A stretch of DNA of 64,000 nt, taken from positions 124,001 through 188,000 of the IMG/VR virus record IMGVR_UViG_3300017917_002374; one strand, given 5' to 3'. Position numbers and translations under genes: made by a program. Below, piece by piece: positions 6,104 to 26,477 of the stretch (the first letter of the stretch is position 1; each line of letters starts with the position of its first letter). Below the pieces are notes generated by a model. The model made no database searches. It was not told where the DNA came from and saw nothing but the letters and a program-made list of their open reading frames with translations.

Positions 6104-7078
6104 ATGGCAGAACTATTTAACATCAACAACAAGAAAAAAGTAATCAATCGCATTGGACGAGAATATTGGATCTGGAACACAGACAAATTGTATGAACAGC
6201 GCATGGCAAGAGAAAATGGTCCTTATCAATCACGCAACTTAGTAATGAATCGTAGATTGCTGCCCAATGCTAGAACTGTGATTGATGTAGGTGCTAATAT
6301 TGGCATGAATACCATTGAATATGCCACGTGGTGCAAAGACATTAAAAGTTTTGAGCCTATACAGAGCAGTCTAGAACTCATGAAGTTGAATGTGGATATT
6401 GCTCGTGCAGCCAAACTCAAAGGACGCTATTGGGATAACCGACTCAAACAAGTGCGACATCAACCAGATCACGACGACGGCTGGTTCAAGCAAGCAGATG
6501 GTACCTTTGCCAGTCTTGACTTAGTGGGCAATATTGAATATTTTGAATATGCTCTTGGAAAAGAAAATACCACTATTGTGATGGAACAAAAAACAGCAGA
6601 GTGCAGTAGAGGCGATGCTGTGCTGGCACAGGGGCGAAACACTCATAATCCTACACAAACAGCAGAACAAAGAACACTTGACAGTTTTAACTTTCAGGAT
6701 GTAGACTTAATCAAGATTGACGTTGAAGGCACCGAACTGTTTGTGCTTCAAGGCGCTGTGGATACCATACGTCGCTGTCATCCTGTAGTACAGGTAGAAC
6801 TGCGCGATACTCACTGCAAGAGATTTGGATACAAGTGCGACGATATTATTGATCTCATGATGAGTTTAGGTGATTATGTGATGTGCGACTTCAACGGCAA
6901 CGATCTAGGGAAAACTTATCAAAAGGTATCAGGTGTAATGGATAGATTTTTTGTTCCTAGATCAATATTTGTTGCTACAGAATTTAAAAACAAACGAGTG
7001 CATCCAGGCATGAAAAAAACAGCCAAAAAACCCAAAGTAGATCAAACAGTTGTGGACAATCTTTTAACAGTAGACTAA
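6104..7078 (+). CDS. FkbM-family methyltransferase
   Basis: VIDVGANIG SAM motif, SFEP, IKIDVEGTELFVLQGA. Confidence 0.88.
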   Translation: MAELFNINNKKKVINRIGREYWIWNTDKLYEQRMARENGPYQSRNLVMNRRLLPNARTVIDVGANIGMNTIEYATWCKDIKSFEPIQSSLELMKLNVDIARAAKLKGRYWDNRLKQVRHQPDHDDGWFKQADGTFASLDLVGNIEYFEYALGKENTTIVMEQKTAECSRGDAVLAQGRNTHNPTQTAEQRTLDSFNFQDVDLIKIDVEGTELFVLQGAVDTIRRCHPVVQVELRDTHCKRFGYKCDDIIDLMMSLGDYVMCDFNGNDLGKTYQKVSGVMDRFFVPRSIFVATEFKNKRVHPGMKKTAKKPKVDQTVVDNLLTVD

Positions 7079-7087
7079 GGAGACTAG

Positions 7088-7294
7088 ATGTATAAGGAAA
7101 AAATCCGACACCTTGAAGAAATGCATCGCGTGTTAAACAAGCAAATTGACGACATGGAACGCAATCATCCTCATGTGGAAGTAAACAAACTTGCTGAAAT
7201 GAAAAAACAAAAATTAGCCTTGCGTGACGAAATCAGTCGCTTGACACGATTGCAATGGGAACATGACCACGAACGTGTGGACCTAGGAGATTGA
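7088..7294 (+). CDS. DUF465/YdcH-like small coiled-coil protein
   Basis: LEEMHRVLNKQI...MKKQKLALRDEI pattern; AGGAG RBS. Confidence 0.7.
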   Translation: MYKEKIRHLEEMHRVLNKQIDDMERNHPHVEVNKLAEMKKQKLALRDEISRLTRLQWEHDHERVDLGD

Positions 7295-7295
7295 T

Positions 7296-7808
7296 ATGGA
7301 TAGACCAGGCCACGGCTTAGCTAAGATGTTTACAGGCATAGAAGTAGAACACACACCAGCACATGGTATGAAAACCTTGTTTGTGGTAGGTGTGCAACCA
7401 AAAGAATTGGTTGAAGCTGCATGCGTAGCCTACAAATGTCAACATGTGTATTTTGGTGCCAATCAAAGTTTTCCAAAATTGCATACCAACAGCAACGATT
7501 GGACAGTTTGGGAAAACATGATTTTTCCATTTCTTTCCCAAGGATATCTCTGCACTCTGGATCTTGATGTGAGTTGTGTAGAAGGCTTGCTGGAAAGCGG
7601 ACTTGTTGAACATCATAATTTTATTCCAATGATTTCAATTAAGTTGCCCTATATCAATCAACTAGGGTATAATGCTACAATCAAACTAGATGATAAAGAT
7701 TTTGCAGCAACCAATCCTGGCGTTTGGTGTCACAGTGTGCATGAGTTACAAAAACGCGAACAATTTACCAGTTGGTCTAAATATAGTCAAGATGAGGTCA
7801 TACGATGA
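7296..7808 (+). CDS. Hypothetical protein in dpd cluster
   Basis: 170-aa ORF between dpdA and dpdL-like gene. Confidence 0.7.
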   Translation: MDRPGHGLAKMFTGIEVEHTPAHGMKTLFVVGVQPKELVEAACVAYKCQHVYFGANQSFPKLHTNSNDWTVWENMIFPFLSQGYLCTLDLDVSCVEGLLESGLVEHHNFIPMISIKLPYINQLGYNATIKLDDKDFAATNPGVWCHSVHELQKREQFTSWSKYSQDEVIR

Positions 7809-8008
7809 AAGAATTCTTAATAAGAGATGAAGCAGCATTTAAATTGCGAGGCACTATGAAACCGTGTTTGCGTCCAGATGATCTCTGGTGCGTAGAATTC
7901 ACCGGCGAACAGTACAATGACAAAGGCGAAATGACTGGTGCCAGCACCTATCAATTTTTTCTAACCAATGAACACATAAGCAAAATGGTACAGGGATTAC
8001 AATCATGA
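7805..8008 (+). CDS. Hypothetical protein
   Basis: ATGA-coupled ORF. Confidence 0.65.
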   Translation: MKEFLIRDEAAFKLRGTMKPCLRPDDLWCVEFTGEQYNDKGEMTGASTYQFFLTNEHISKMVQGLQS

Positions 8009-8451
8009 CCATTCAAGCAGAACGTGAGCAAACGGATATCAATCAACAGGTAGCAGATCGCATGATTTGGGTATCCTTTGCTAAAGAAGGTATCCATAAA
8101 TACCCCGCAGCCTTGGAGGATCCAAAACTTGCAGACGTATCTTTTCTGGGTTATCCCCATCGTCATATGTTTCACTTCCGGGTGTCAATCTCGGTCTTTC
8201 ACAATGACCGTGATATCGAATTCATTCAATTCAAACGGTGGCTTGAATCATTGTATTCAGGGCAAGAAAATTGTTTGCGACTGGACTACAAAAGCTGTGA
8301 AATGATTGCAGATGATCTATATGTCCAAATTAATAGTCGTTATCCAGGCAGACATGTTATAATCAGTGTAAGCGAAGATAATGAAAACGGTTGTGAGATT
8401 GTGTATCGCGATCCACGCACACCAGAAAAAACTTTTCAACATCCAGTCTAA
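8005..8451 (+). CDS. dpdL: QueD-paralog T-fold protein, DpdL-like (putative CDG decarboxylase)
   Basis: LGYPHRHMF matches LxxxHRHxF. DRDIEFIQFK and SCEMIADDLY parallel QueD DFxxLK and xxENxA motifs. A canonical queD is present separately. Confidence 0.7.
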   Translation: MTIQAEREQTDINQQVADRMIWVSFAKEGIHKYPAALEDPKLADVSFLGYPHRHMFHFRVSISVFHNDRDIEFIQFKRWLESLYSGQENCLRLDYKSCEMIADDLYVQINSRYPGRHVIISVSEDNENGCEIVYRDPRTPEKTFQHPV

Positions 8452-8460
8452 TAGGAGAAA

Positions 8461-8739
8461 ATGATGGCTCAGCCAAAGTGGCTCAAAAAGTATTTGACCA
8501 TGCGTCCCGAAGTATCCAAGATCTACGATGATCTTGAGCAGTATCGCGAGTTCTGCGTTAATTATGGTCATGTGTTTGACGAACGTGATCTTTACAATGA
8601 ACGTAACACCAGTTATCAAGATTTCGTAAGACATCAAAGTGGGAAACATGTAAAGAATCGTTGGTATCAACGAGACGATGATCGTCCTCGTGTGCCAAGA
8701 GGACACAACAACTATCGCACAAGGAATAACAATGCGTAA
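8461..8739 (+). CDS. Hypothetical protein
   Basis: AGGAG RBS, 92 aa. Confidence 0.7.
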   Translation: MMAQPKWLKKYLTMRPEVSKIYDDLEQYREFCVNYGHVFDERDLYNERNTSYQDFVRHQSGKHVKNRWYQRDDDRPRVPRGHNNYRTRNNNA

Positions 8740-9910
8740 GCTCTACTACATGGGGCTTGAACCTTACAAAGCACGATACACCTTACAGTTACAAGAGTGG
8801 AATCGTGCTGTGTTTGAACGGCGCGGTATCAACTATGAAATTGTTACTGGAGAAACTCTTAGTAATGATCAAGCTATTGTAACAGGACAGGTGCTGGATG
8901 CACATGGTCGCACATACTTTGGCATGAGTCAGTTGATGAACCTTATTCGTAAAATGAAAGCTGGAGAGCTTAATCATGCAGATGTTGTATACTTTGAAGA
9001 CATGTTTCAACCCGGCATCGAGAGCCTACCTTACATTCTCAATCAAATTGATCCTGTTAACCGTCCTAGGATTTTTGTGCGTTGTCTTGCTCAATCCATT
9101 GACCCAGATGATTTCGTACATGTATGGGGCATGGGCGAATGGATGGGCCATTATGAAAAGATGGTGGACAGTTTTGTAGATGGTGTATTGGCTACCAACG
9201 AAGAAATGGTCATGCACATGAAGGTGGCAGGTTGGAAGAGCAAGATCTACAACATTTCAGGCTTGGCCTTTGGTAAAGACGAAGTTCGCTCGCGTGTGCC
9301 CGGTGAACTGCGTCCATTCAACGAACGTAAGATGCGTGTGGGCTTTGCTGCACGTTGGGATCAAGAAAAGCAACCAGATTTCTTCATGGATCTCATTGAA
9401 GCATATCACGAACGTCATCCAGGATCTGGCATTGAGTTCTGTTTGTTTTCTGGTGCTAAACTAAAAAGCAACAACGACAGCTACATGGCTCGTACTCGTG
9501 CAATGCAAGCTGAAGGCAAGTTGACCATACATGAGGATCTGGAAAAGAATGAATACTACGAGCTTCTTAACGATACTCGTGTACTATTTAATTGTGCTTT
9601 GCAAGATTGGGTCAGCAACACTGTGTCCGAAGCCGATACACTGGGAGCAAATGTTCTCTATCCTGCGTATAGGAGTTTTCCTGAGTCTTTTGCTAATGAT
9701 CATGAACGTCTTTATGTACCCTGGTCAATAGACGATGCTCTGGACAAACTGGAAAAGCTACTGCGGGCACCGCATCCTAATCAAGGCAAAATCAGTGACT
9801 GGACCAATGGCACTGTGGACCGTATCCTTGATATCATTACAGGGCAAGGTGAGCAATGGCAGCGCATGAACACAGACTATCGCAAACACACACACGAAAG
9901 CAAGTTCTAA
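8732..9910 (+). CDS. GT-B glycosyltransferase (GT4-like)
   Basis: GFAARWDQEK..F and DWVSNTVSEA (E-x7-E-like region), YPAYRSFPE; ATG at 8732. Confidence 0.75.
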   Translation: MRKLYYMGLEPYKARYTLQLQEWNRAVFERRGINYEIVTGETLSNDQAIVTGQVLDAHGRTYFGMSQLMNLIRKMKAGELNHADVVYFEDMFQPGIESLPYILNQIDPVNRPRIFVRCLAQSIDPDDFVHVWGMGEWMGHYEKMVDSFVDGVLATNEEMVMHMKVAGWKSKIYNISGLAFGKDEVRSRVPGELRPFNERKMRVGFAARWDQEKQPDFFMDLIEAYHERHPGSGIEFCLFSGAKLKSNNDSYMARTRAMQAEGKLTIHEDLEKNEYYELLNDTRVLFNCALQDWVSNTVSEADTLGANVLYPAYRSFPESFANDHERLYVPWSIDDALDKLEKLLRAPHPNQGKISDWTNGTVDRILDIITGQGEQWQRMNTDYRKHTHESKF

Positions 9911-10146
9911 TGAGCTTTGACCTCTGGTACCAAATGTTGAAAGATTCTATATACTGGCAGAACATACCAGGAGACATGGCTGTTGACATCTATCATCGTA
10001 CTGTTGTGGCGTGGGGGCATGGTCAAAACTACTATCTACAATCAGGTCCGGAACGTGTGGATTTGACAAAACTCTATGAACAATGTAAACTAATTGAAAC
10101 TCTTAAAGGAACAAATTATGACAAAGAAATCCCCTGGGGCGGTTAA
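9910..10146 (+). CDS. Hypothetical protein
   Basis: TAATG-coupled start at 9910. Confidence 0.55.
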   Translation: MSFDLWYQMLKDSIYWQNIPGDMAVDIYHRTVVAWGHGQNYYLQSGPERVDLTKLYEQCKLIETLKGTNYDKEIPWGG

Positions 10147-10336
10147 AACAATCAGCGATAAACTGACCAAAGTTGGTGAATCATTCACAGTGAACATGTA
10201 CGATAATGGATACATGATTGAAGTAAGTGGAAGAAACAGCCAAGGTGATTGGGCAACTGCCAAAATCATGGTATCAAATCTCAACGATCTAACCACACTG
10301 ATTGCCGAAGCAGCAGAAATGGAACGGGACAATTAA
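10118..10336 (+). CDS. Hypothetical protein
   Basis: AAGGA RBS, ATG at 10118. Confidence 0.65.
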   Translation: MTKKSPGAVKTISDKLTKVGESFTVNMYDNGYMIEVSGRNSQGDWATAKIMVSNLNDLTTLIAEAAEMERDN

Positions 10337-11334
10337 TGTCTACCACTGTGTTAGTAACAGGTGCCACTGGCTATATTGGTAGTCATGTGTGCAAACATCT
10401 ACTTGATGCAGGTTATAGAGTAGTAGGTGTGGATCGTGTGAGTAGAGATCATGCTCTTCCTTACATGACTTTTTTAATCAATGAAGACTATTACAGCGAC
10501 GGTGTAGTTAATTTTTTAAATAGCGAAACTGTGCATGCGGTGGTTCATTGTGCAGGTACCAGTTTGGTAGGTCCTAGTGTGTTGGATCCTGCAGAATACT
10601 ATACCAACAACGTGGCCAAAACAGCTATGTTTCTGGATGTGCTGCGTCGTTTGCCTAATCCACCTGCGTTTGTGTTTTCTAGCAGTGCCAGTGTGTATGG
10701 ATCACCAGATGTGGATATCATCACTGAAGACACACCATGGAATCCTGTGAGTCCATATGGTCAGACCAAGGCCATGATTGAACTCATGCTCACTGACATG
10801 TGCAAAGCATACAACATGGCAGCCATGAGCTTGCGTTACTTCAATGCTTGCGGCGCAGATGTTGATTCTGGTGCACTAGGACAAGCACCAGGTGCCACAC
10901 ATATCATAGCCAGATTGTTAGAAAGCATAAGAGATCGTAAACAGTTTATTTTATATGGCAATGACTACAACACTCCTGATGGCAGTTGCATTAGAGATTA
11001 TGTGCATGTAGATGATCTTGCTCGTGCTCATGTATATGCCATACAGTATCTATTGAGTTTTGAACACAATCAGCATTACATGGTAAATCTAGGCAGTGGT
11101 CGCGGATACAGTAATGTGGATGTGATTGCTGCTGTGGCAAGACACATTGGACCTGTTGACTTGCTTGAAGGTTCTAGACGTGCTGGCGATCCAGATCGTT
11201 TGGTAGCCAGCAATGATCTGGCTCAAGCCTATCTAGGTTGGTCACCAGAACACTCAGATTTAGAAACCATTATTACCAGTGCGTGGCGTTGGTATAATAA
11301 CACATCAAATCTTGTTGACACAGCATCTAAATAA
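10336..11334 (+). CDS. galE: UDP-glucose 4-epimerase
   Basis: TGATGYIGSH, FSSSASVYG, YGQTK, LRYFNACGA, DGSCIRDYVHV, RRAGDP. Confidence 0.92.
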   Translation: MSTTVLVTGATGYIGSHVCKHLLDAGYRVVGVDRVSRDHALPYMTFLINEDYYSDGVVNFLNSETVHAVVHCAGTSLVGPSVLDPAEYYTNNVAKTAMFLDVLRRLPNPPAFVFSSSASVYGSPDVDIITEDTPWNPVSPYGQTKAMIELMLTDMCKAYNMAAMSLRYFNACGADVDSGALGQAPGATHIIARLLESIRDRKQFILYGNDYNTPDGSCIRDYVHVDDLARAHVYAIQYLLSFEHNQHYMVNLGSGRGYSNVDVIAAVARHIGPVDLLEGSRRAGDPDRLVASNDLAQAYLGWSPEHSDLETIITSAWRWYNNTSNLVDTASK

Positions 11335-11381: not shown

Positions 11382-12149
11382 ATGGTATACAATAAAATAT
11401 ATGTAAGTCACGATGAAGAAACAGCACTTGACGCAATGGCAGGTGATGCTGGTTACGAAATAGGCCAAGCTCACAAACATCTCGCATTTAAAATGCGTCG
11501 CGATGGTAAAAGATTCTGGGCCGGTGACAATATTAGCGAATATGTTGATGGCTACATGAAAGCACAGTTGATTGACGAAGCCACAGCAGCATTTGAACAG
11601 GTACTAGACACACTGTTGATTGATCGCGAAAACGATCCTAATTCAAAAGGCACAGCACGACGTCTTGCCAAGATGTACTTTAACGAAATCATGGCAGGTA
11701 GATATGATCCAGCCCCTGATGCAACCAGTTTCCCAAATCATACAGAAGATCGTTATGCAGGCATGCTGGTTGTTCGTAGCGAATTGCGCAGCATGTGTAG
11801 CCATCATCATCAACCAGTTAATGGAGTAGCATATATTGGAATCATTGCTGCCGATCAGCTGATTGGTCTAAGCAAGTACACTCGTATTGCTCAATGGTGC
11901 GCTCGGCGTGGTACACTTCAAGAAGAACTGTGCAATGATATTGCCAGAGAAATCATGAAAGCCACAGGCAGTAAAGATGTGGGCGTTTATATTCAAGCCA
12001 CACATGGTTGTTGCGAAAATCGTGGTATTATGGCGCACTCCAGTCTTACACAAACCACAGTTCTCACAGGTGTATTCAAAGATGATCCTGCGGTAAAGAA
12101 AGAGTTCATGGACAATATCAAACTGCAACAAGAATTTGCACCGCGATAA
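11382..12149 (+). CDS. folE: GTP cyclohydrolase I
   Basis: GTARRLAKMY, SMCSHHHQP, GLSKYTRI, LQEEL, HGCCENRG. Confidence 0.96.
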   Translation: MVYNKIYVSHDEETALDAMAGDAGYEIGQAHKHLAFKMRRDGKRFWAGDNISEYVDGYMKAQLIDEATAAFEQVLDTLLIDRENDPNSKGTARRLAKMYFNEIMAGRYDPAPDATSFPNHTEDRYAGMLVVRSELRSMCSHHHQPVNGVAYIGIIAADQLIGLSKYTRIAQWCARRGTLQEELCNDIAREIMKATGSKDVGVYIQATHGCCENRGIMAHSSLTQTTVLTGVFKDDPAVKKEFMDNIKLQQEFAPR

Positions 12150-12160
12150 GGAGAGCTAAT

Positions 12161-12721
12161 ATGGCATTTTGGAAAGTTTCAACCACTCACAAAAAATCTT
12201 GTGAAGAACACATGATTTGGTATCAGTCTGGTCGCAGTTTCAAAATTATCACAGGATATCGTTGGGGAACATTCACAGTAGAAACCAATGACGACAATCC
12301 ACCTGAAGGCATAGACCCAGACAACCCAGAAGGTATCAACATGTATGATTATTTCAGCGACAATGCAGATTGCGCTGAACTAGACAGCATGGATGATGGT
12401 TGGTACATGGATTTTGAATTTGACGACGAGATGTTCTCAGAAGATGAACAAGAACAACTGCGCCAGCTATGGGAAGATGATAGCTTTTCTGCTTTAGAAG
12501 GTGCAGGCTGGGTCAATGACGAAACCGAAGCATGGTTGTTTGGACCATTAGAAATCACTAGAGAAGATGTTGAACCTTCTGCTGATGAATGGATCAAGGC
12601 AGACAATTTACCAGAATTACAGGATGTGTTTGAAAAAGACATGACTGACAATGTGCCAAAATCTGCCACGATTCCACTATGGCCATTTCCAACAGGAGAT
12701 AAAGATGATAAATCAAGTTAA
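12161..12721 (+). CDS. Acidic hypothetical protein
   Basis: AGGAG RBS, 186 aa. Confidence 0.75.
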   Translation: MAFWKVSTTHKKSCEEHMIWYQSGRSFKIITGYRWGTFTVETNDDNPPEGIDPDNPEGINMYDYFSDNADCAELDSMDDGWYMDFEFDDEMFSEDEQEQLRQLWEDDSFSALEGAGWVNDETEAWLFGPLEITREDVEPSADEWIKADNLPELQDVFEKDMTDNVPKSATIPLWPFPTGDKDDKSS

Positions 12722-12932
12722 GCAAGCAGCAGAAAATCTCATCAAGCGTGTTATGAACATGCAAACTTTTAAAATCATTAGACCACTACCTGACGAATTT
12801 GAGTTTCGCGGACCGGCACCGTTTGATATCCGGGTGGACAAAGAATGCATTATGACATTTACGGTTCACTGTATGACCTTACAAGAAGCCAATCAAATGG
12901 TTGATGAATATCTTGAAAAAAATTCTATTTAA
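12705..12932 (+). CDS. Hypothetical protein
   Basis: AGGAG RBS before ATG 12705. Confidence 0.65.
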   Translation: MINQVKQAAENLIKRVMNMQTFKIIRPLPDEFEFRGPAPFDIRVDKECIMTFTVHCMTLQEANQMVDEYLEKNSI

Positions 12933-13101
12933 TACTAAAATATACGTGTCCTTACTGGCATGTTGTATGTCCGTGGTGTGTATTGCACAAGCCATACTCA
13001 ACATAGATAATATGTCTGCTGCCATGGCGTGGGCAGTGGCTTGTGCAGCCTGGATACCGCATGTGTTTGTAAACCGACTAACCAAGGAAGATATAACATG
13101 A
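12901..13101 (+). CDS. Small membrane protein
   Basis: Two hydrophobic stretches. Confidence 0.5.
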   Translation: MMNILKKILFNTKIYVSLLACCMSVVCIAQAILNIDNMSAAMAWAVACAAWIPHVFVNRLTKEDIT

Positions 13102-13307
13102 GAGATCAATTAATAGACACACTACGAGTAAACTTTTCAGCCAATTTACTCAAACACAAAATGAATGTGGAAATCATGCTCAAGAAACCCATGGCCATTC
13201 ACGATCACACTGACTGGATGACTGCTGTGGAAAATGAGATGGCCATGATTGCAGAGTATGAAGACAAGCTGAGTGTGTTGAACAAACACTTTGGGAGCAA
13301 AGAATAA
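13098..13307 (+). CDS. Hypothetical protein
   Basis: AAGGA RBS, ATG 13098. Confidence 0.7.
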   Translation: MRDQLIDTLRVNFSANLLKHKMNVEIMLKKPMAIHDHTDWMTAVENEMAMIAEYEDKLSVLNKHFGSKE

Positions 13308-13903
13308 TGGGTGCCATGCGAGAAAAAGATTCTGCAGACTTTGATCTAGAAGCATTCATTGATCTGTTTGATGAGGCAATTACCAGCGACGATCCAAATG
13401 TTCAAAAAACTCTACAGCATCTAATGGTTATTGCCGCGTTGGCTCGCAATCATAATCAGCACAATCACCGCAATGGCCCTCTGCGCAGACTGTTTGAAGA
13501 CGTTCGCGACATAAACAACAGACTTGGCCATCTAGAAACCAATCTTAGAGGTTATCAAAAAGGCTATGGTCCAGTTCCTACGCCATATCCTAGTATGCCT
13601 TTGAATCCAGTTCCTATTTGGACTGCTCCTACTACAGGCACACGCTGGCCACCTTCCCCAGGAACTTACCCACCAGGCACACTGTTTGCACAAGGTGTGG
13701 GCGGTCCAGTTGGGAGTGGCGCAGCACTAGCTGGTGCCCAAAGCACTACCAGCTACACCTGGGATCCTGTGGCGGCTAACAGCATTACTAAGAAAATCAA
13801 CAGCGGAACTCCTGGAGGTATTGCAGAACGTGTGGACGAATTGCTCAAGGATAACAAATACAAAGGCAGCAGTGTAGGAGCACCAGATGTTAAAACTGCT
13901 TGA
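13307..13903 (+). CDS. Hypothetical protein with Pro-rich linker
   Basis: TAATG-coupled ORF. Confidence 0.7.
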   Translation: MGAMREKDSADFDLEAFIDLFDEAITSDDPNVQKTLQHLMVIAALARNHNQHNHRNGPLRRLFEDVRDINNRLGHLETNLRGYQKGYGPVPTPYPSMPLNPVPIWTAPTTGTRWPPSPGTYPPGTLFAQGVGGPVGSGAALAGAQSTTSYTWDPVAANSITKKINSGTPGGIAERVDELLKDNKYKGSSVGAPDVKTA

Positions 13904-14372
13904 GCGTTTGGGCCGCAAGCGTATCATTTATGATCGCATCAACAACGAGCCATATCTTGAACGCTACTATCTGTTCTTGAAAGAAAGAAAACGTTTTCCG
14001 TTTAATGTGTTTCTGCACAAATTCTTAAAAGGCGATCCAGATGATGTACATGATCATCCATGGCCATATGCCACACTGATTTTAAAGGGCGGTTATTATG
14101 AATATGTTCCAGTCTTTAATAGCAAAGGTCTTAAAACTCATGAACTTTGCCATTGGCGTGGGCCCGGACATTTCCGTATTTGTAAGCCTGAGTCTTTTCA
14201 TCGCATTGAACTAAAACCTGGTGTGACTGCATGGACACTGTTCATGCCAGGTCCGCACAAACGAGAGTGGGGATTCCTTACCGGCAAAGATCCATTGAGA
14301 AATTGGGAACACAATGAAAGTTATCTCACCAGGCGCAGTGGCTCTGCGCCCAATCAAAATCACAGTGAATAA
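13887..14372 (+). CDS. Cupin-fold phage protein
   Basis: FLHKF...HDHPW...GGYYE...FHRI...WTLF cupin metal motifs. Confidence 0.7.
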   Translation: MLKLLERLGRKRIIYDRINNEPYLERYYLFLKERKRFPFNVFLHKFLKGDPDDVHDHPWPYATLILKGGYYEYVPVFNSKGLKTHELCHWRGPGHFRICKPESFHRIELKPGVTAWTLFMPGPHKREWGFLTGKDPLRNWEHNESYLTRRSGSAPNQNHSE

Positions 14373-14385
14373 ACTAAACCAAGAA

Positions 14386-14667
14386 ATGGCGGATTGGTGG
14401 ATCATGCAAGGTGCCGAAGCACAGGAAATACATGATCCTTATTGGACGCATTTTCGTGGAAACGTGGTGGACAAACATTATCGTATTCGAATGCCAGGTC
14501 TAGGCGGCAAGTGGAGTCATAAGTTTAATGATGGCAGTGGCATACACCTAATTCATTTGCCAGAAATCTATGCCAGTACTGCCAGTTTGTTTTGTTTAAA
14601 ATTTTTTGATGCTATAATATCACATAACATAGAGGTTCCAAAACATGAAGATTCATTACAACAATAA
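14386..14667 (+). CDS. Hypothetical protein
   Basis: ORF from ATG 14386. Confidence 0.55.
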   Translation: MADWWIMQGAEAQEIHDPYWTHFRGNVVDKHYRIRMPGLGGKWSHKFNDGSGIHLIHLPEIYASTASLFCLKFFDAIISHNIEVPKHEDSLQQ

Positions 14668-15193
14668 ACATTTACACGCATGGTTGCACACGATCATGCG
14701 TCAAATGCAACACTACAATTTCAAACCAGATTACATTGTGGGTATTACTCGTGGAGGATTAATTCCTGCTACTATGTTAAGTCATTATCTTGATGTGCCC
14801 ATGCACACACTGGATGTGAGTTTTAGAGACAGCGGCACAGGACCAGAAAGCAATCTCTGGATGGCCGAAGATGCTTTTGGCTATGTGAACAAAGAGGATC
14901 GTACAGACGAAGGCACAGTTAGTGACCCTAAACTACGCAAGAACATTTTGATTGTGGATGATATTAACGACAGTGGTCGTACACTGCAATGGATCAAGGA
15001 CGATTGGGAAAGTGGTTGCATGCCTCGCAGTGAAGACTGGAATGACGTTTGGCATCATAATGTACAATTTGCGGTAATGGTAGACAACACCGCTAGTAAC
15101 TTTAAAGGTGTTGATTTTTACGGTACAGAAATTAACAAGCAAGAAACACCTGCCTGGGTAGTGTTTCCTTGGGAAAACTGGTGGGAGAATTAA
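14645..15193 (+). CDS. Purine phosphoribosyltransferase (Gpt-like)
   Basis: VGITRGGLIPA, PRPP motif ILIVDDINDSGRTL, WVVFPWE. Confidence 0.88.
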   Translation: MKIHYNNKHLHAWLHTIMRQMQHYNFKPDYIVGITRGGLIPATMLSHYLDVPMHTLDVSFRDSGTGPESNLWMAEDAFGYVNKEDRTDEGTVSDPKLRKNILIVDDINDSGRTLQWIKDDWESGCMPRSEDWNDVWHHNVQFAVMVDNTASNFKGVDFYGTEINKQETPAWVVFPWENWWEN

Positions 15194-15643
15194 ATGCTGA
15201 ATGGTAAACGAGTAGGCTTTACAGCCAGTACATTTGATCTATTGCATGCAGGACATGTGGCCATGTTGCGCGAAGCCAAAGACAAATGTGAGTACCTAAT
15301 ATGTGCATTACAAAATGATCCTACTATGGATAGACCAAACAAAAATCGTCCTGTGCAGAGTATTGTGGAACGGCAGTTGCAACTGATTGGCTGCAAGTAC
15401 GTGGATGAAGTTTGGGTGTACAATACAGAAAAAGATCTAGAGGATCTATTGCTCACACTACCAATAGATGTTAGAATACTTGGCGTTGAATACGAAGGCA
15501 AGGAGTTTACTGGTCGTGAAATATGTCATAAACGTAATATTGAACTTTACTTTAACGGTCGTGATCATAGCTTTAGTAGCAGCGAGCTTCGTCAGCGTGT
15601 GGCATCAGCTGAGGATTCTAAGAAGAGATTAAACGAACAATAA
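15194..15643 (+). CDS. Cytidylyltransferase (TagD-like)
   Basis: STFDLLHAGH (HxGH), PVQSIVER, SSSELR. Confidence 0.88.
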   Translation: MLNGKRVGFTASTFDLLHAGHVAMLREAKDKCEYLICALQNDPTMDRPNKNRPVQSIVERQLQLIGCKYVDEVWVYNTEKDLEDLLLTLPIDVRILGVEYEGKEFTGREICHKRNIELYFNGRDHSFSSSELRQRVASAEDSKKRLNEQ

Positions 15644-15728
15644 ATATTAGTCTCAGCGGTCTCAAGGCATTCATCCCGCTTTACAAATTCTGCATGCCAT
15701 TGCTAACTTTCAGGAGATAACAATGGCA
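15641..15728 (+). promoter_or_regulatory. TAAATA promoter plus pseudoknotted 5' UTR of queD (riboswitch candidate)
   Basis: P1 AGCGG/CCGCT, P2 GGCAT/ATGCC, alternative stem TGCCATTG/CAATGGCA covering the ATG. Confidence 0.6.
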
Positions 15729-16208
15729 AAATTTTACTCAACAAAAACATATGGTAATGACAGAGGTCTGTCATGTTGCTTTAGACAATGGCGTGCCACA
15801 CACAGTCATTGCTCCACACTACACGGTTATTCAATTGGCATTAAACTGATCTTTGAATGCGACACATTAGATGACAAAAACTGGTGCATGGACTTTGGAG
15901 GGCTCAAAGAATTCAAAGCATGGGCCGATCACATGTTTGATCATACATTGGTCATTGCAGAAGATGATCCTCATTTGGAAACATTCAAACAACTAAATGA
16001 AATTACGGGCGGATTCAACGAAAGCGGAGTGTGTGATTTGCGTATTGTGCCTGGAGTAGGCTGTGAAATGTTTGCCAAATTGTGCTATGACAAAATGGCT
16101 GAGCTATTAGCCAGCGGCACGATGCGTTATCCAATCAATCCGACTGTGCGTGTTAAAAGCGTTGAAGTGTTTGAACATGGTGCTAATTCAGCCACATACG
16201 AAGGATAA
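15723..16208 (+). CDS. queD: 6-carboxy-5,6,7,8-tetrahydropterin synthase
   Basis: HCSTLHGYS, MDFGGLK, DHMFDH, GCEMFA, VEVFEHGANSA. Confidence 0.93.
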   Translation: MAKFYSTKTYGNDRGLSCCFRQWRATHSHCSTLHGYSIGIKLIFECDTLDDKNWCMDFGGLKEFKAWADHMFDHTLVIAEDDPHLETFKQLNEITGGFNESGVCDLRIVPGVGCEMFAKLCYDKMAELLASGTMRYPINPTVRVKSVEVFEHGANSATYEG

Positions 16209-16242
16209 AACAGTTTTTTAGCATTTTTGCCCGTTGTCAGTA

Positions 16243-16271
16243 TTGACATTCGGGCTGTTTTGTTTTATAAT
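16243..16271 (+). promoter_or_regulatory. sigma70 promoter
   Basis: TTGACA-N17-TATAAT. Confidence 0.88.
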
Positions 16272-16301
16272 GTTGTTTCAATATTTCTTGAGGATTCTAT
16301 C

Positions 16302-16625
16302 ATGTCTCGTAAATTCAGCACCTACTCGCATTCAGTTAAAGATCTCAAAATCAATGTACGGTTTGAAGCAGAAGTATTAAATGAACAAGGTCTGGTCGTT
16401 GACGACAGTTTTGGTCTTGAGTTTCATGAATATTTTCATAGCTTGGAGATTGCTGCTGATGCCACACTTGAAAGCACAGCTCAAACTGTGTATGAACATT
16501 TTGAACAAAAACTGAATTCAGACCCTGCTAATGTTTATACCAACTTGATGGGCGACGAGTATCCTCGGGTAAAACTTATCTTTGTAGACGTACACGGCGC
16601 TTACACTGCTACCTATGGAGATTGA
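16302..16625 (+). CDS. Hypothetical protein
   Basis: GAGG RBS before ATG 16302, downstream of promoter. Confidence 0.7.
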   Translation: MSRKFSTYSHSVKDLKINVRFEAEVLNEQGLVVDDSFGLEFHEYFHSLEIAADATLESTAQTVYEHFEQKLNSDPANVYTNLMGDEYPRVKLIFVDVHGAYTATYGD

Positions 16626-16628
16626 TTA

Positions 16629-17069
16629 ATGAACATGCATAAACGTATTTTTGATGGCCCAGACCATTTAGACGAAAGCGATGCACCATGGGACGACACA
16701 GTGAGAAAAGACTTTCACGTGGCGGTGTTTAACGATAAGTACCCTGTGACCTCGGGTCATATGCTGTTTGTTCCTCAGTACAATAGCATCAGTGTACTCA
16801 AAGAAACCTTTGAGGATGCATTTGATTACGGAAAACAAAAAGTTGACACAGGGGAATGGGACGGCTTCAACATCGGACTTAACTATGGCGAAGCCGCGGG
16901 ACAGACTGTGTCATGGCCTCATATTCATCTTATACCCCGTAGAAAAGGCGATGTGCCGGATCCAGTAGGTGGTGTACGGAATACAATTCCAGGCAAAGGC
17001 AACTATAGAAAGATGCCAACCACAGTTCAAACAGTAGTTGGCGACAGTGAAGGCGGAGACATAGATTAA
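16629..17069 (+). CDS. HIT-family nucleotide hydrolase
   Basis: YPVTSGH, GEAAGQTVSWPHIHLIPR histidine triad. Confidence 0.92.
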   Translation: MNMHKRIFDGPDHLDESDAPWDDTVRKDFHVAVFNDKYPVTSGHMLFVPQYNSISVLKETFEDAFDYGKQKVDTGEWDGFNIGLNYGEAAGQTVSWPHIHLIPRRKGDVPDPVGGVRNTIPGKGNYRKMPTTVQTVVGDSEGGDID

Positions 17070-17950
17070 TGATAATTGTAACAGGAGATCGTGGATTCAT
17101 TGGCAGTGAGTTAAAGCAGTATCTTGAGTCAGTTGGACACAAGGTTCACGGTCTTGATTGGGCCACTAGAGGCAAAACCTATACTGTAGATGAACCAGTT
17201 GAATGGATCTATCATATGGGTGCAGTAAGCAGTACCGACGCAGGCGATTGGCAGGAACTGGTTACAAAAAACATTCAAGACACACAGGCATGGATACGTG
17301 CAGCCGAGCAATGGAACTGTGGTATAACCTATGCCAGCAGTGCTAGTACATATGGTCCATGGACCAACAGTCCAGAATGGGGACCGGTGCAACCACAACA
17401 CTTGTATGGAGTTAGCAAGCTGGCAATTGACAATTGGTGTGCAGAACAATCATTTAGCGTACCTGTGCAAGGTGTGAGATTTTTTAATGTGTACGGACGT
17501 AATGAACAACACAAACGCCAGCCCAGTCCAGTCAGACGTTATCTTGATCAAGCAGCTACCAAGCGCGAACTCACAGTATGGCATCACAATGGTCGTTATG
17601 GATCAAGAGATTTTATCAGTATAGATGATACTATTCATGCCATGGAACAGTTACGTGCTGCTAGAGTAAGTGGAGTGTACAACATAGGCACAGGCAAAAC
17701 TGATAGTTTTTATGACATTGCCAAAACCTGTCAACGACTGGCAGGAGTGACCAATTGTAAGTTGGCGGTGGTCCCCATGCCTGAACACATGTTGGCTACT
17801 TATCAATGGGAAAGCTGTGCTAATTTGGACAAATTAAGGCAAGTTATTCCTGATTGGAATCCAGAAAACATACATGACTGGCTTGAACACAACTGGCAAA
17901 CCCTGTATAATAAAACAATTGAGGACTTAAACAATGAAATTCAAAATTAG
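17069..17950 (+). CDS. NAD-dependent epimerase, HldD/RfaD-like
   Basis: GDRGFIGS, HMGAVSST, YASSASTYG, YGVSK, RFFNVYG, SRDFI, YQWESCA. Confidence 0.82.
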   Translation: MIIVTGDRGFIGSELKQYLESVGHKVHGLDWATRGKTYTVDEPVEWIYHMGAVSSTDAGDWQELVTKNIQDTQAWIRAAEQWNCGITYASSASTYGPWTNSPEWGPVQPQHLYGVSKLAIDNWCAEQSFSVPVQGVRFFNVYGRNEQHKRQPSPVRRYLDQAATKRELTVWHHNGRYGSRDFISIDDTIHAMEQLRAARVSGVYNIGTGKTDSFYDIAKTCQRLAGVTNCKLAVVPMPEHMLATYQWESCANLDKLRQVIPDWNPENIHDWLEHNWQTLYNKTIEDLNNEIQN

Positions 17951-18830
17951 TGAAATTTTTTATAGTACGCAAGGCGAAGGTCGCTATGTAGGTGTGCCTA
18001 GCATATTCATGCGCACGTTTGGTTGTAATTTTAAATGTGAAGGCTTTGGTTGCAAGCCCGGAGAAAAAAGCAAAGAACGTGAGCAGGTTTTAGAGTTAAT
18101 ACATGCTGAGCCAGCAAAATATCAAAAATTTGAAGATCTTCCTTTAGTGTCAACTGGCTGTGACAGTTATGCTAGTTGGGATCCAAAATTTAAAGACTAC
18201 AGTCCTAGTATAGACAACGATACGATTGTAGAACGTATGATGTCTTTATTACCAAACGGACAATGGCAACAGCCTAACGGTAATAACATACATCTAGTAA
18301 TCACTGGTGGAGAGCCACTCCTAGGTTGGCAGCGTAACTATCCTTCTTTACTAGATCATCGTGGCATGTTTGATCTTGCCAATCTTACATTTGAAACCAA
18401 CGGGACTCAAGAACTTTCGGAAGATTTTTATGATTGGATACAGGACTGGCATGCTGATCCTGATTTTATTCAAGAACATCTAGGACAATTTAGAGAATTA
18501 GTGTTTAGTGTAAGTCCTAAGTTGAGTGCCAGTGGTGAAAGCTGGGCAGATGCAATCAAACCTGATATAATCAAACAGTATCAGGAGGTAGGACTAACCT
18601 ATCTTAAATTTGTAGTGTCAACTGCGGAAGACTTTCAAGAAGTAGACCAAGCAGTTGCTGAATATCGCAATGTTGGGTTCATGGGTAGTGTGTATGTGAT
18701 GCCTGTGGGAGGTACACTAGAAAGTTATAATCAGAATCGTGTGCATGTTGCAGACGAAGCACTCAAACGCGGTTACTATTACAGCCCAAGGCTTCACGTG
18801 GATCTGTGGGGCAACGGGTGGGGCAAATGA
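17934..18830 (+). CDS. queE: 7-carboxy-7-deazaguanine synthase (radical SAM)
   Basis: EIFYSTQGEG, RTFGCNFKC...CDS, ITGGEPLL, FETNGT, SVSPKL, RLHVDLWG. Confidence 0.93.
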   Translation: MKFKISEIFYSTQGEGRYVGVPSIFMRTFGCNFKCEGFGCKPGEKSKEREQVLELIHAEPAKYQKFEDLPLVSTGCDSYASWDPKFKDYSPSIDNDTIVERMMSLLPNGQWQQPNGNNIHLVITGGEPLLGWQRNYPSLLDHRGMFDLANLTFETNGTQELSEDFYDWIQDWHADPDFIQEHLGQFRELVFSVSPKLSASGESWADAIKPDIIKQYQEVGLTYLKFVVSTAEDFQEVDQAVAEYRNVGFMGSVYVMPVGGTLESYNQNRVHVADEALKRGYYYSPRLHVDLWGNGWGK

Positions 18831-19271: not shown

Positions 19272-19635
19272 AAAACCCACAGCAAAAAAAACTGCTACAA
19301 AAAAGACAGAACCCAAACTGCGTGTGGGTGCCAGTGCCAAGGACGCTGCTACAAAAAGAAACGAGCCATATATCAGTGTGCTTAATGTAGAGCTAGACCC
19401 AGACAATGTGCAAAATGGTGCATTTGAACTGGATTGGAATGATGTGTTTGTGGCCAAGCTGGTACGAGCAGGCTACAAAGGCAAAGACGATGCACAGATT
19501 GTGGATCAGTGGTTTCAGGACATTTGCCGAAACGTGCTCATGGAAAACTATGAGCAGTGGGCAGCCAATCAAACAGGCGAAAACAGAATTATAAATCGTC
19601 GTGATTTAGGCGACGGACGTACAGAGGTCAGCTAA
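19258..19635 (+). CDS. Hypothetical protein with Lys-rich N-terminal tail
   Basis: AAGGA RBS; AKKPTAKKTATKK. Confidence 0.75.
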   Translation: MATAKKPTAKKTATKKTEPKLRVGASAKDAATKRNEPYISVLNVELDPDNVQNGAFELDWNDVFVAKLVRAGYKGKDDAQIVDQWFQDICRNVLMENYEQWAANQTGENRIINRRDLGDGRTEVS

Positions 19636-20798
19636 TGACTCATACACTTCATACTCATATAACCACTGAAAACTTTGAGCAAGATGATTACAGAGTTTAT
19701 CTCACACGGGATCTTGAATGGACCACTCGTAATCATCCCATGCAAAAAACACCTATAGAGCTTGAGGGAGCATGGGGTGAACCAAATGCAAAATTTGATC
19801 CTGTGTTCATGCAACGACTGTGCGCATTTGCAAAAGATCATAAATTTTCTCTACCTCCTGATTCCATGTGGGGCAATTATTATCTGCATCATCAATCTTT
19901 TCTAGACATGCTCAAGCAGGATCAACTGGAATCAGCACATGATCTGTTGAATCTCATGCATCAATCAGTGCTAATGACCGGAATGTCACAAGGTGTTACC
20001 GAATTTGGTTACATCACAAGATATCCAGACACAGTTGGCACCATGCGATTGAAACGTCATTGGGATGTGTTTCTTGGTTTCATGGAATACTGCGGGGTGA
20101 TCAGTCCTCAAAATCATGAGCAAGGAGCCAGCTATGTGGCAACTCCTTTGAATGACATGTTGGATGCGTTGCCAGCAAATATTGTGGCACCACAATGGCA
20201 AGGTGGTCTTTGGTCACTTAAAACCAATAGAGGACTGTTTACAGACCGAGATCTTACTGCACTGTATCTTGCATATAAGATTAGAGAAAAAATGCCCGTG
20301 GAAGCATCTATAACCGAAATAGGCGGCGGTGCTGGATATCTAGGTTATTGGTTGCATGTTTTGGGTTATAGAAAAATTTGCATGGTAGACTTACCAAGCA
20401 TCATATGCTGTCAAGCCTATCAGTTGGCACAGAACATTGGTGCCCACGAAGTGTGTTTGCCAAACGAAGAATATCATGGTCAGGCTGTGAGATTTTTAAC
20501 TCCTGATCAATTTTATTCAAATGTTCACACAACAGATCTTGTGGTCAATTGCGACAGCATGCCAGAAATGGATGATGCCTCATTGCATGCATACTTGAAG
20601 TCTATAGCTCAATCAGCGAATTATTTTTACAGTATTAATCAAGAGTCTCGTGGCACGTATGGACCACAAAAACGAATGCAACATGTGGTACGCAGCGTGT
20701 TGAAAAAACAATACAGCACAAACTACACTCGTATAGATCGTAGTCTTTTTTGGTTACGCAATGGCTACACTGAAGAATGGTATTCTATAATCAAATGA
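19635..20798 (+). CDS. Putative sugar O-methyltransferase
   Basis: EIGGGAGYLG, VDLP, DLVVNCDSMPEM, FYSINQE. Confidence 0.65.
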   Translation: MTHTLHTHITTENFEQDDYRVYLTRDLEWTTRNHPMQKTPIELEGAWGEPNAKFDPVFMQRLCAFAKDHKFSLPPDSMWGNYYLHHQSFLDMLKQDQLESAHDLLNLMHQSVLMTGMSQGVTEFGYITRYPDTVGTMRLKRHWDVFLGFMEYCGVISPQNHEQGASYVATPLNDMLDALPANIVAPQWQGGLWSLKTNRGLFTDRDLTALYLAYKIREKMPVEASITEIGGGAGYLGYWLHVLGYRKICMVDLPSIICCQAYQLAQNIGAHEVCLPNEEYHGQAVRFLTPDQFYSNVHTTDLVVNCDSMPEMDDASLHAYLKSIAQSANYFYSINQESRGTYGPQKRMQHVVRSVLKKQYSTNYTRIDRSLFWLRNGYTEEWYSIIK

Positions 20799-25968: not shown

Positions 25969-26050
25969 GCCCATGTGGTGGAATGGTAGACACGCTAGTC
26001 TTAGGAACTAGTGCGAGAGCGTGGGGGTTCGAGTCCCTCCATGGGCACCA
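25969..26050 (+). tRNA. tRNA-Leu(TAG)
   Basis: CTAGT-CTTAGGA-ACTAG, long variable arm, GTTCGA, CCA. Confidence 0.95.
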
Positions 26051-26062
26051 TTAAATACGTGT

Positions 26063-26308: not shown

Positions 26309-26310
26309 TT

Positions 26311-26386
26311 GGGGGTATAGCTCAGCTGGGAGAGCGGCGGCTTTGCAAGCCGTAGGTCGCAGGTTCGATCCCTGTTACCTCCACCA
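26311..26386 (+). tRNA. tRNA-Ala(TGC)
   Basis: Loop TTTGCAA, G3:U70, CCA. Confidence 0.95.
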
Positions 26387-26393
26387 AATAAAT

Positions 26394-26470: not shown

Positions 26471-26477
26471 ATTCTAT

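Follow-up and report, generated by a model that had tools for sequence, protein, structure and literature searches.

A conserved pseudoknot in the leaders of phage queD genes is a riboswitch candidate with preQ1-I-like architecture

Introduction

The preQ1-I riboswitch (Rfam RF00522; types I-III) is a compact H-type pseudoknot, associated with queuosine-pathway genes, with a 5-bp P1 ending in G-G/C-C, a highly conserved specificity cytidine at the end of L2, a conserved uridine in L1 directly after P1 that reads the ligand edge, and a conserved poly-A stretch of L3 directly preceding the P2 3' strand; its subtypes vary in loop and linker size (PMC10622847). Its aptamer is 30-36 nt long with a P2 of 3-4 pairs, lies upstream of queC, queF, queT or yhhQ, and binds preQ1, and often preQ0, with nanomolar affinity; P2 formation sequesters the Shine-Dalgarno (SD) or a terminator element, making it an OFF switch. 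The preQ1-II and SAM-II/SAM-V riboswitches are H-type pseudoknots with major-groove triples that likewise sequester the SD in the pseudoknot (OFF) and occur in bacterial genes, while in translational ON riboswitches such as the Vibrio vulnificus add adenine riboswitch, ligand-stabilised folding of a three-way-junction purine aptamer removes a strand from a helix occluding the ribosome binding site (RBS). Riboswitches are rare in phages, and the known ones are copies of bacterial classes; the glutamine (glnA) riboswitches of marine myophages are a precedent for phages carrying their own, which is described there as rare (PMC9004378).

Here we examined a 64,000-nt stretch of viral DNA (positions 124,001 to 188,000 of IMG/VR record IMGVR_UViG_3300017917_002374; hereafter the window). 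An initial annotation, made from sequence alone, had proposed a preQ1-I-like pseudoknot in the 5' UTR of its queD gene, together with an alternative stem burying the start codon, and had inferred that a guanine/7-deazaguanine-family ligand stabilises the pseudoknot and frees the AUG. We found that the same element precedes QueD-like genes in at least about 196 viral contigs from uncultured phages, giving 142 distinct aptamer sequences, and that it is a strong candidate for a new riboswitch with preQ1-I-like architecture; our literature searches returned no report of a riboswitch on phage queD, and the viral scan was not extended to metagenome contigs.

Results

The described stems are present but unremarkable in a single sequence

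Every stem in the initial annotation lies where it was placed, and its observation is confirmed: P1 and P2 are as given in Table 1, and TGCCATTG (15695-702) pairs with CAATGGCA (15721-28), covering the ATG. The P1 loop starts with T15660 and ends with C15675, and the linker TTACAAA lies at 15681-87. Two points needed correction. The 'TAAATA box' said to precede P1 is the stop codon of the upstream ORF plus ATA; a consensus scan found no + strand promoter there and there is no -35 partner, so we rejected it as a promoter. P2 is also longer than described, as two further pairs, C15672-G15692 and A15673-U15691, extend it across an invariant U15671/C15693 opposition.

Taken alone, this sequence does not exceed chance expectation: the 100-nt fold has z = -1.25, and the anti-AUG hairpin, the minimum free energy (MFE) structure, has -12.2 kcal/mol and z = -2.31. 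We rejected a reading of P1 as a terminator, as its loop is 16 nt, its stem 5 bp and there is no U-tract. No further copy of the element was found in the window, where the next best covariance model score is 10.7 bits.

Table 1 Features of the queD leader and flanking sequence, in window coordinates; counts out of 142 refer to unique aptamers
Position	Strand	Feature	Sequence	Observations
15194-15643		Upstream ORF		TAA stop codon at 15641-43, followed by ATA; stops 11 nt before P1
15655-15659	+	P1 5' strand	AGCGG	Pairs with 15676-80; family variants AGCGG/CCGCU, AGAGG/CCUCU, UGCGG/CCGCA, AGUGG/CCACU, AGUCG/CGACU and AUCGG/CCGAU
15660-15665	+	L1	UCUCAA	Variable first base, invariant C-U, then a spacer of variable length that tracks P2 length; first three bases ACU in 52, UCU in 51 and CCU in 39 of 142
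15666-15670	+	P2 5' strand	GGCAU	Pairs with 15694-98; the five inner P2 positions are canonical in 115-132 of 142, with up to 6 pair types
15671-15673	+	U15671 (opposite C15693) and P2 extension C15672, A15673	UCA	C-G in 142/142; A-U in 140/142, the other two (loci L034 and L075) carrying G-C, a double change; U/C opposition invariant
15674-15675	+	L2	UC	Invariant C directly 5' of the P1 3' strand; UC in 102, CC in 24, AC in 14, plus two 3-nt variants
15676-15680	+	P1 3' strand	CCGCU	
15681-15690	+	L3	UUACAAAUUC	Consensus N-W-A-N-A-N-A-Y-U-C; alternating A's and U-C invariant in the 117-row ungapped alignment
15691-15693	+	P2 extension 3' strand U15691, G15692, and C15693	UGC	
15694-15698	+	P2 3' strand	AUGCC	Shared with the alternative helix (15695-15702)
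15695-15702	+	Anti-start helix, 5' strand	UGCCAUUG	Overlaps P2 by 4 nt
15712-15716	+	Shine-Dalgarno	AGGAG	6 nt before the ATG, inside the loop of the anti-start hairpin
15721-15728	+	Anti-start helix, 3' strand	CAAUGGCA	Includes the start codon at 15723-25
15723-16208	+	queD-like ORF		161 aa; PTPS/QueD family with a CxxxHGY motif; PF01242 at 1.6e-16, TIGR03367 below its cut-off; about 50% identical to the QueD of Pseudomonas phage Iggy and other phages
16229-16271	+	Terminator-like hairpin with a U-tract after queD		Fold z = -3.75; overlaps a 12/12 sigma-70 promoter (16243-16271)

Both pseudoknot stems covary across relatives

The initial annotation had named an absence of covariation in homologues as grounds for abandoning the proposal; instead, both stems covary. 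P1 is 99.6% paired, with double changes at 4 of 5 pairs; none of 500 shuffles reached the observed values, slid registers gave 29-54% against 91%, and RNAalifold predicted P1 independently. Because a MAFFT alignment mis-registers the 4-bp P2 variants, we scored P2 in two other ways. On an ungapped alignment of 117 sequences, which could not have been fitted to the pairing, P2 is 79% paired against 21-37% in slid registers, with a covariation score of 0.497 against 0.178 for shuffles (0 of 500 reached it); with the register set only by unpaired anchors, the inner five pairs are 87.6% paired against 26-49%. Abundant G-U pairs place the structure on the sense RNA. Pairing of the conserved YUCUGC with the P1 5' strand was rejected on inspection, because it does not covary with the AGAGG variants.

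These data refute a chance occurrence of the stems in an ordinary intergenic spacer, for which only the single-sequence z-score speaks: 142 distinct aptamers carry compensatory changes in both stems, and covariance model scores are 31-67 bits in all 80 pattern-found loci searched with the model. The loop nucleotides are invariant although the downstream QueD proteins are only 30-85% identical to that of the window, and 30-100% identical to each other.

The element is associated with queD and essentially confined to phages

Of the 80 loci listed by the pattern scan, 78 were scored QueD-like downstream; in the other two the ORF caller stopped at a short ORF 6 nt after the motif, which we read as a calling artefact without re-checking them. 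Of all 196 motif loci, 194 have a QueD homologue. A second copy precedes a radical-SAM gene in two loci (L067 and L072); assignment of the L067 gene as QueE is unsupported, as BLASTP against the QueE-like ORF of the window gave E = 0.05. The gene downstream in the window is a QueD-like enzyme of the phage 7-deazaguanine pathway, as the initial annotation had held, and FolE and a QueE-like gene are also in the window. No QueC or DpdA homologue was found in the window, and next to queD in the 196 loci QueC was found in 1 and DpdA in 0; the phage may therefore not make preQ0 or preQ1 locally. The hairpin after queD and its overlapping promoter suggest that the leader controls queD alone in this phage.

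In 596 Gb of prokaryotic genomes the pattern gave 10 hits, of which 3 are GC-rich false positives and 7 are QueD leaders on short MAG contigs. In GenBank phages, megablast of the locus and blastn of the 52-nt motif found nothing, and protein searches found only QueD homologues below 60% identity. Eight cultured phages (ACP17, X1, R5C, BUCT-ZZ01, HD01, Motura, Iggy and Mendera) have queD packed against the upstream gene and gave no covariance model hit with filters off; three loci with 93% identical QueD (L007, L010 and L015) also lack the element, so it is dispensable.

Of 166 distinct upstream regions, 57 have a sigma-70 match of at least 9/12, and in 30 of these the -10 box ends 7 nt before P1, placing the element at the very 5' end of many transcripts. 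In the window, with no promoter seen just upstream and the preceding ORF ending so close to P1, a terminating ribosome could perturb P1. The 5'-terminal position, the unremarkable single-sequence folding energy and the absence of the element from some close relatives would fit a ligand-independent element, such as a 5'-terminal stabiliser, a translational enhancer or standby site, or a temperature- or Mg2+-sensitive fold, in which the alternative helix simply tunes expression. We consider this improbable, because invariant unpaired nucleotides in all three loops and four independently designed platforms (below) that all compete for the P2 3' strand are hard to explain without a regulated switch, and the strict association with one metabolic gene family is unexpected for a generic stabiliser.

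The P2 3' strand is predicted to pair alternatively with the start codon or SD

We wondered whether the anti-start helix of the window is conserved. Of 160 unique leaders, 141 show at least 5 bp between the P2 3' region and the SD/AUG region in the MFE structure, and the AUG or SD is occluded in 155. We distinguished four platform designs, all of which use the P2 3' strand; in type C and D relatives the SD itself is the paired target. All platform structures are MFE predictions, and the shuffle control for this pairing is only moderate (6.6 against 3.8 pairs). The platform hairpin is more stable than the bare P2 duplex in 155 of 160 leaders. This mutually exclusive pairing, so far computational only, fits the translational ON switch that the initial annotation had predicted.

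The same competing-helix architecture would work with a protein effector, and conserved pseudoknots with invariant loops also serve as protein operators, for example the phage T4 gene 32 and ribosomal-protein leaders; a phage or host protein, possibly QueD itself or a shared regulator, might thus bind the pseudoknot and shift the same equilibrium. This is unlikely, however, as the element is retained across phages whose QueD is only 30-40% identical and whose neighbouring genes differ, no conserved candidate RNA-binding gene was seen next to it, QueD is a T-fold enzyme with no known RNA binding, and a second copy sits before an unrelated radical-SAM gene; the small size and junction-centred conservation are typical of metabolite aptamers.

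Discussion

We propose, with a probability of roughly 0.6, that window 15655-15728 is the leader of the phage queD mRNA and holds a small H-type pseudoknot aptamer (about 44 nt, 15655-15698) coupled to a translational expression platform. In this model, without the effector, the P2 3' strand and the bases after it would pair with the start-codon region, forming a hairpin that occludes the AUG and encloses the SD so that queD is not translated; with the effector bound, P2 and its C-G/A-U extension would be locked onto the loop of P1, so that the P2 3' strand is unavailable, the hairpin cannot form and the RBS is open. We infer that the pocket lies at the P1/P2 junction, where the invariant L2 cytidine, the invariant L1 C-U and the conserved L3 meet, as in preQ1-I; the likely ligand class is therefore a heterocycle with a guanine-type Watson-Crick face, candidates being a 7-deazaguanine intermediate (CDG, preQ0, preQ1), guanine, or a pterin (H2NTP, CPH4, folate). 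Our analysis demonstrates the pseudoknot, its conservation, the competing helices, the 5'-terminal position and the gene association, whereas ligand binding, the direction of regulation in vivo and the ligand's identity are inferences; neither binding of any small molecule to the protein-free RNA, preQ1 and preQ0 included, nor pairing of the L2 cytidine with a ligand was assayed. An ON switch responding to a product of the pathway would be unusual logic, so the ligand may be something else entirely.

A more far-reaching reading, which we hold only tentatively, is that this is a new, phage-restricted riboswitch class, an expanded H-type pseudoknot sensing a guanine-faced heterocycle other than preQ1, for example CDG, a pterin such as H2NTP or folate, or guanine itself, and switching ON translation of QueD, the branch-point enzyme that diverts the folate precursor H2NTP into 7-deazaguanine synthesis for phage DNA modification. 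It would then be the first riboswitch known to govern a viral DNA-hypermodification pathway, and one with no cellular counterpart. A conserved, virus-only aptamer would show that phages evolve their own metabolite sensors, and would give a regulatory handle on 7-deazaguanine DNA modification, an anti-restriction strategy; the ligand's identity could reveal which intermediate these phages monitor. A 44-nt ON-type pseudoknot is also an attractive minimal part for synthetic biology, and could show how the preQ1-I fold is re-tuned in size, logic and possibly ligand.

Comparison with known riboswitches

The interpretation in the initial annotation is partly supported: the H-type pseudoknot, the ON-type alternative helix and the pathway gene hold, but membership of the preQ1-I class is not supported. 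Searches with preQ1-I, -II and -III covariance models had been suggested as a check of that assignment; scans against Rfam 15 at E<=10 of window 15400-16000 and of two relatives (locus L020, 2880-3060, and locus L041, 1230-1410), stretches of 181-601 nt, matched none of these, nor SAM-II, SAM-V, fluoride, guanidine-III or any other Rfam family, and gathering-score scans of the whole window and 13 diverse loci gave only tRNAs. The element does have the general features of a translational riboswitch that can be examined by computation: a conserved aptamer with covarying stems and invariant junction or loop nucleotides in the 5' leader of a metabolic gene, and mutually exclusive alternative pairing that links aptamer folding to RBS access.

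The element shares with preQ1-I the H-type pseudoknot, a 5-bp P1 closed by G-C pairs, a cytidine immediately 5' of the P1 3' strand (C in 142 of 142 unique aptamers), an A-rich L3 suited to the P1 minor groove and association with the queuosine/7-deazaguanine pathway. Together with the variation of known preQ1-I subtypes, this might suggest a true but divergent member of the class that binds preQ1 or preQ0 and is wired as an ON switch. We consider this unlikely: besides the lack of a model match and the near absence of QueC and DpdA beside queD, the first L1 base is A, U or C rather than a conserved U, P2 is 5-7 pairs plus the 2-pair extension, the aptamer is about 44-50 nt, and the SD lies 14-40 nt downstream, outside P2, so that P2 formation competes with the RBS-occluding helix rather than sequestering the SD. 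L3 carries three invariant A's, but an extra conserved Y-U-C and then U-G-C intervene before P2, an arrangement that decides the poly-A criterion in neither direction. The element was found upstream of queD rather than queC, queF, queT or yhhQ, and its predicted logic is ON rather than OFF.

Compared with the phage-borne glnA riboswitches, which belong to a bacterial class that also occurs in hosts, the present motif has no known cellular counterpart beyond the MAG-contig hits. With preQ1-II and SAM-II/SAM-V it shares a classical pseudoknot with a longer P2 and pyrimidine-rich loop residues, and the invariant L1 C-U next to the invariant C-G/A-U pairs could form base triples, although this is inference only; those classes, however, place the SD in the pseudoknot. 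With the add adenine riboswitch it has no sequence relationship, and its aptamer is a pseudoknot rather than a three-way junction, but the proposed principle, in which ligand-stabilised aptamer folding removes a strand from an RBS-occluding helix, is the same.

The sequence of the queD leader

The sequence bears out the observation of the initial annotation: both stems of the proposed H-type pseudoknot, and the alternative helix that would bury the queD start codon, read exactly as it had described them. The 'TAAATA box' that it had placed just upstream, however, is the TAA stop codon of the preceding ORF plus three bases, and a consensus scan found no + strand promoter there. Taken alone the sequence is not remarkable, with a z-score of -1.25 for the 100-nt fold and -12.2 kcal/mol with z = -2.31 for the anti-AUG hairpin; the case therefore rests on comparison with relatives.

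Coordinates of leader elements, genes and related loci (L numbers are our labels for viral loci collected in this work)
Feature	Sequence	Position	Description
P1	window	15655-59 with 15676-80	AGCGG with CCGCT
P2	window	15666-70 with 15694-98	GGCAT with ATGCC
P2 extension	window	C15672-G15692, A15673-U15691	pairs across an invariant U15671/C15693 opposition
Alternative helix	window	15695-702 with 15721-28	TGCCATTG with CAATGGCA; the latter contains the ATG (15723)
Shine-Dalgarno (SD) sequence	window	15712-16	AGGAG; in the loop of the alternative helix
queD-like ORF	window	15723-16208	161 aa; variant motif at residues 29-36
Hairpin with U-tract, overlapping a promoter	window	16229-16271	right after the queD stop; hairpin followed by UGUUUUGUUUU
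GTP cyclohydrolase I (FolE)	window	11382-12149	
Purine-type phosphoribosyltransferase (PRTase)	window	14645-15193	
HldE-domain-II-like nucleotidyltransferase	window	15194-15643	ORF preceding the leader
QueE-like radical-SAM protein	window	17934-18830	
Gene group from FolE to the QueE-like protein	window	11382-18830	
Sugar-nucleotide genes	window	6104-11334, 19635-20798, 41890-42855	
tRNA cluster	window	25969-29602	17 genes, + strand; Rfam tRNA, 54-68 bits
Second copy of the motif	L067 and L072	1347-1400	1.6 kb upstream of the queD copy
Generic radical-SAM ORF	L067 and L072	1422-2360	312 aa
Degenerate extra copy	L088	5-54	22 bits
Class I SAM-methyltransferase ORF	L088	116-997	
Loci lacking the element	L007, L010, L015	upstream of 3001	

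Genomic context

The ORF downstream of the leader belongs to the PTPS/QueD family (PF01242, 1.6e-16; TIGR03367 below its cut-off) and is about 50% identical to the QueD of Pseudomonas phage Iggy, Rhizobium phages and others. An alignment showed that this QueD-like clade, including the QueD of the dPreQ0-containing phage Iggy, has an H-C-x3-H-G-Y motif in place of the canonical CxxxHGH (signature motif from PMC10516641); the second zinc-ligand histidine is replaced by Tyr and an extra His precedes the Cys.

The window is part of a 355-kb IMG/VR contig, so this is a jumbo phage. FolE, the purine-type PRTase, the HldE-II-like nucleotidyltransferase, QueD, a HIT protein, a heptose-epimerase-like protein and the QueE-like protein lie together, and the window also encodes a family-B DNA polymerase, thymidylate synthase and a cluster of tRNA genes; a related motif-bearing locus, L090, also carries 7 tRNAs. 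Searching the window by tblastn with the phage Iggy proteins found FolE, QueD and QueE homologues but no QueC or DpdA. A xanthine-guanine PRTase also sits next to QueD-FolE in Synechococcus phage BUCT-ZZ01, and this gene content may point to a CDG-derived or nucleotide-level modification route. The window holds many sugar-nucleotide genes besides, namely an FkbM-type methyltransferase, a glycosyltransferase-like protein, two NAD-dependent epimerase/dehydratases and a sugar O-methyltransferase-like protein, which could serve glycan or DNA-sugar modification.

The leader element recurs upstream of divergent queD genes

A protein-guided scan of viral contigs returned 80 loci whose QueD is 79-100% identical to that of the window. 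Of these, 76 carry the same leader element and a 77th (L079) carries it with one mismatched P1 pair; the remaining three (L007, L010 and L015), whose QueD is 93% identical, lack it altogether, with coding-like sequence running up to the queD SD, which looks like natural loss or replacement of the leader.

A degenerate DNA pattern built from the conserved core found at least 120 further loci. We ran a covariance model of the element (R1) on the 80 of these that the scan listed, and all 80 are strong hits at 31-67 bits. In 78 of the 80 the downstream ORF was scored QueD-like; in the other two the ORF caller stopped at a short ORF 6 nt after the motif, which we read as a calling artefact although these two loci were not re-examined individually. 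Across all loci, 194 of 196 have a QueD homologue. These QueD proteins are only 30-85% identical to that of the window, so the RNA is far better conserved than the protein it precedes. In total we collected 198 instances in 196 loci, giving 142 distinct aptamer sequences.

Both stems of the pseudoknot covary

Covariation among homologous leaders had been named at the outset as a test that the structure might fail, and both stems pass it. On a MAFFT alignment of 49 distinct aptamers, P1 is 99.6% paired and 4 of 5 pairs show changes on both sides, the variants being AGCGG/CCGCU, AGAGG/CCUCU, UGCGG/CCGCA, AGUGG/CCACU, AGUCG/CGACU and AUCGG/CCGAU. None of 500 shuffles reaches the observed values, slid registers give 29-54% paired against 91%, and RNAalifold predicts the same helix on its own. 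The degenerate extra copy in L088, upstream of the methyltransferase ORF, has a fully compensated different P1 (ACCAG/CUGGU) but weakened P2 and extension.

To avoid fitting the alignment to the pairing, we counted P2 positions outward from two conserved unpaired anchors, UCA in L2 and CUGC at the end of L3. The five inner P2 positions are canonical in 131, 129, 132, 115 and 115 of 142 aptamers (87.6%), against 26-49% in shifted registers, with up to six pair types per position. An ungapped 37-column alignment of 117 distinct sequences gave a covariation score of 0.497 against 0.178 for shuffles (0 of 500), with slid registers at 21-37%. P2 is longer than the initial annotation had it, continuing by two further pairs; the only two sequences that change the A-U pair of this extension (L034 and L075) change both sides, to G-C. 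Many G-U pairs place the structure on the sense RNA, and loss of one base on each strand in the GGCG/CGCC variants is a paired deletion.

The single-stranded regions also have a consensus: L1 begins N-C-U, followed by a spacer whose length tracks P2 length; L2 is (U/C/A)-C with an invariant C; and L3 is N-W-A-N-A-N-A-Y-U-C.

Position of the element in the transcript

In 57 of 166 distinct upstream regions there is a sigma-70 match of at least 9/12, whose -10 box ends 6-9 nt before P1 in most of them and exactly 7 nt before it in 30; P1 therefore starts at or next to the 5' end of the mRNA. No such promoter is visible in the window itself, so queD is probably co-transcribed there with the preceding genes. 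Downstream of queD, a strong hairpin with a U-tract (z = -3.75) overlaps a perfect TTGACA-17-TATAAT promoter, such that the terminator and the next promoter share sequence, suggesting that in this phage the leader controls queD alone.

A competing helix is predicted to occlude the ribosome binding site

In every lineage the P2 3' strand and the bases after it can instead pair with the ribosome binding site (RBS), and the design differs between lineages. In types A, B and related (106 leaders), a Y-G-Y-C-A-U-Y segment pairs with R-A-U-G-R-C-A around the start codon; the flanking pair switches between C-G (70) and U-A (28), and the helix follows changes in codon 2, for example AAGUCAUC with GAUGACUU. 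In type C (47 leaders) CCUAUG pairs with CAUAGG of the SD, and in type D UGUCUUC pairs with GGAGACA of the SD. In whole-leader minimum-energy folds of type B leaders (for example those of loci L051, L064, L068 and L102), the P1 5' strand plus L1 (GGUCUUU...) can also pair with the conserved GGAGACUAGAGAUGGC start region, a second aptamer-disrupting, RBS-occluding alternative.

In minimum-energy folds of 160 distinct leaders, 141 have at least 5 pairs between the P2 3' region and the SD/AUG region, with a mean of 6.6 pairs against 3.8 when that segment is shuffled, and the AUG is fully paired, or the SD at least 60% paired, in 155. The platform hairpin (median -9.3 kcal/mol) is more stable than the bare P2 duplex (median -5.8, before any pseudoknot loop penalty) in 155 of 160. 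The default state should therefore be closed, and anything that stabilises the pseudoknot should open the RBS. This is the ON-switch reading that the initial annotation had proposed; it is supported as an architecture, but has not been demonstrated as a function, and a ligand-independent element is an improbable though not excluded alternative.

The motif is essentially viral

In one genome for each of 185,579 prokaryotic species (596 Gb), the pattern gave 10 hits. Three are GC-rich false positives; seven are true QueD leaders on short MAG contigs, from a Bacteroidetes bin, Rickettsiales MED657, Crocinitomicaceae, Chitinophagales and Nitrospira bins, which are most likely co-binned phage DNA and might hint at hosts. 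GenBank phages gave no nucleotide match, and eight cultured phages with QueD-like genes have no room for a leader and no covariance-model hit. We found no description in the literature of a riboswitch on phage queD, and the two main papers on phage 7-deazaguanine pathways do not mention riboswitches, which are described as rare in phages. The most likely explanation (probability about 0.6) is a new, phage-specific pseudoknot riboswitch that activates queD translation.

Candidate ligands

The interpretation given in the initial annotation is only partly supported: comparison strongly supports its structural part, its family assignment is not supported, and what follows on the ligand, which was not identified, is our inference rather than a result. 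The invariant cytidine next to P1 suggests a ligand with a guanine-type face, and three observations bear on the choice. First, the regulated gene is almost always queD, and QueD is the step that diverts H2NTP from folate synthesis into the 7-deazaguanine branch (pathway as in PMC6884629 and PMC10516641). Second, in L067 and L072 a second full copy of the motif, whose platform hairpin lacks an obvious SD, precedes an unrelated radical-SAM gene, which fits a pathway-level signal better than QueD autoregulation; a protein-binding operator is an unlikely alternative. Third, within about 7 kb of queD in 196 loci, FolE appears in 39 loci and the QueE-like gene in 42, but QueC in only 1 and DpdA in none. 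This recalls Cellulophaga phage phiST, which has FolE, QueD and QueE without QueC or a canonical DpdA (PMC10516641), and weakens preQ0 or preQ1 as the obvious ligand. No ligand binding has been shown; for an ON switch a precursor or substrate signal (guanine or GTP, H2NTP, folate status) or CDG are at least as plausible as preQ1.

Comparison with the preQ1-I riboswitch

We then compared the element with the preQ1-I riboswitch, whose defining features are a compact H-type pseudoknot, a conserved L2 cytidine that pairs with the ligand, a conserved L1 uridine and L3 adenines that read the ligand's other edge, a poly-A stretch directly before P2, and SD sequestration by P2 (PMC10622847). A search with the preQ1 covariance models, the check that had been suggested for this assignment, came out against it: no Rfam 15 model (preQ1-I, -II, -III or any other riboswitch) matches at E<=10 on short stretches of three variants, or at gathering score on the window and 13 more loci. 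The base after P1 is not a conserved U, P2 is roughly twice as long, the SD lies outside the aptamer and the predicted logic is inverted, making a divergent but true preQ1-I riboswitch a doubtful reading. L3 gives a mixed picture, as its A-rich stretch is followed by a conserved YUCUGC. The RNA does share with preQ1-I the fold type, the 5-bp P1 closed by G-C pairs, the invariant cytidine in the equivalent place and an A-rich L3; we therefore describe it as preQ1-I-like in architecture but not as a member of that family.
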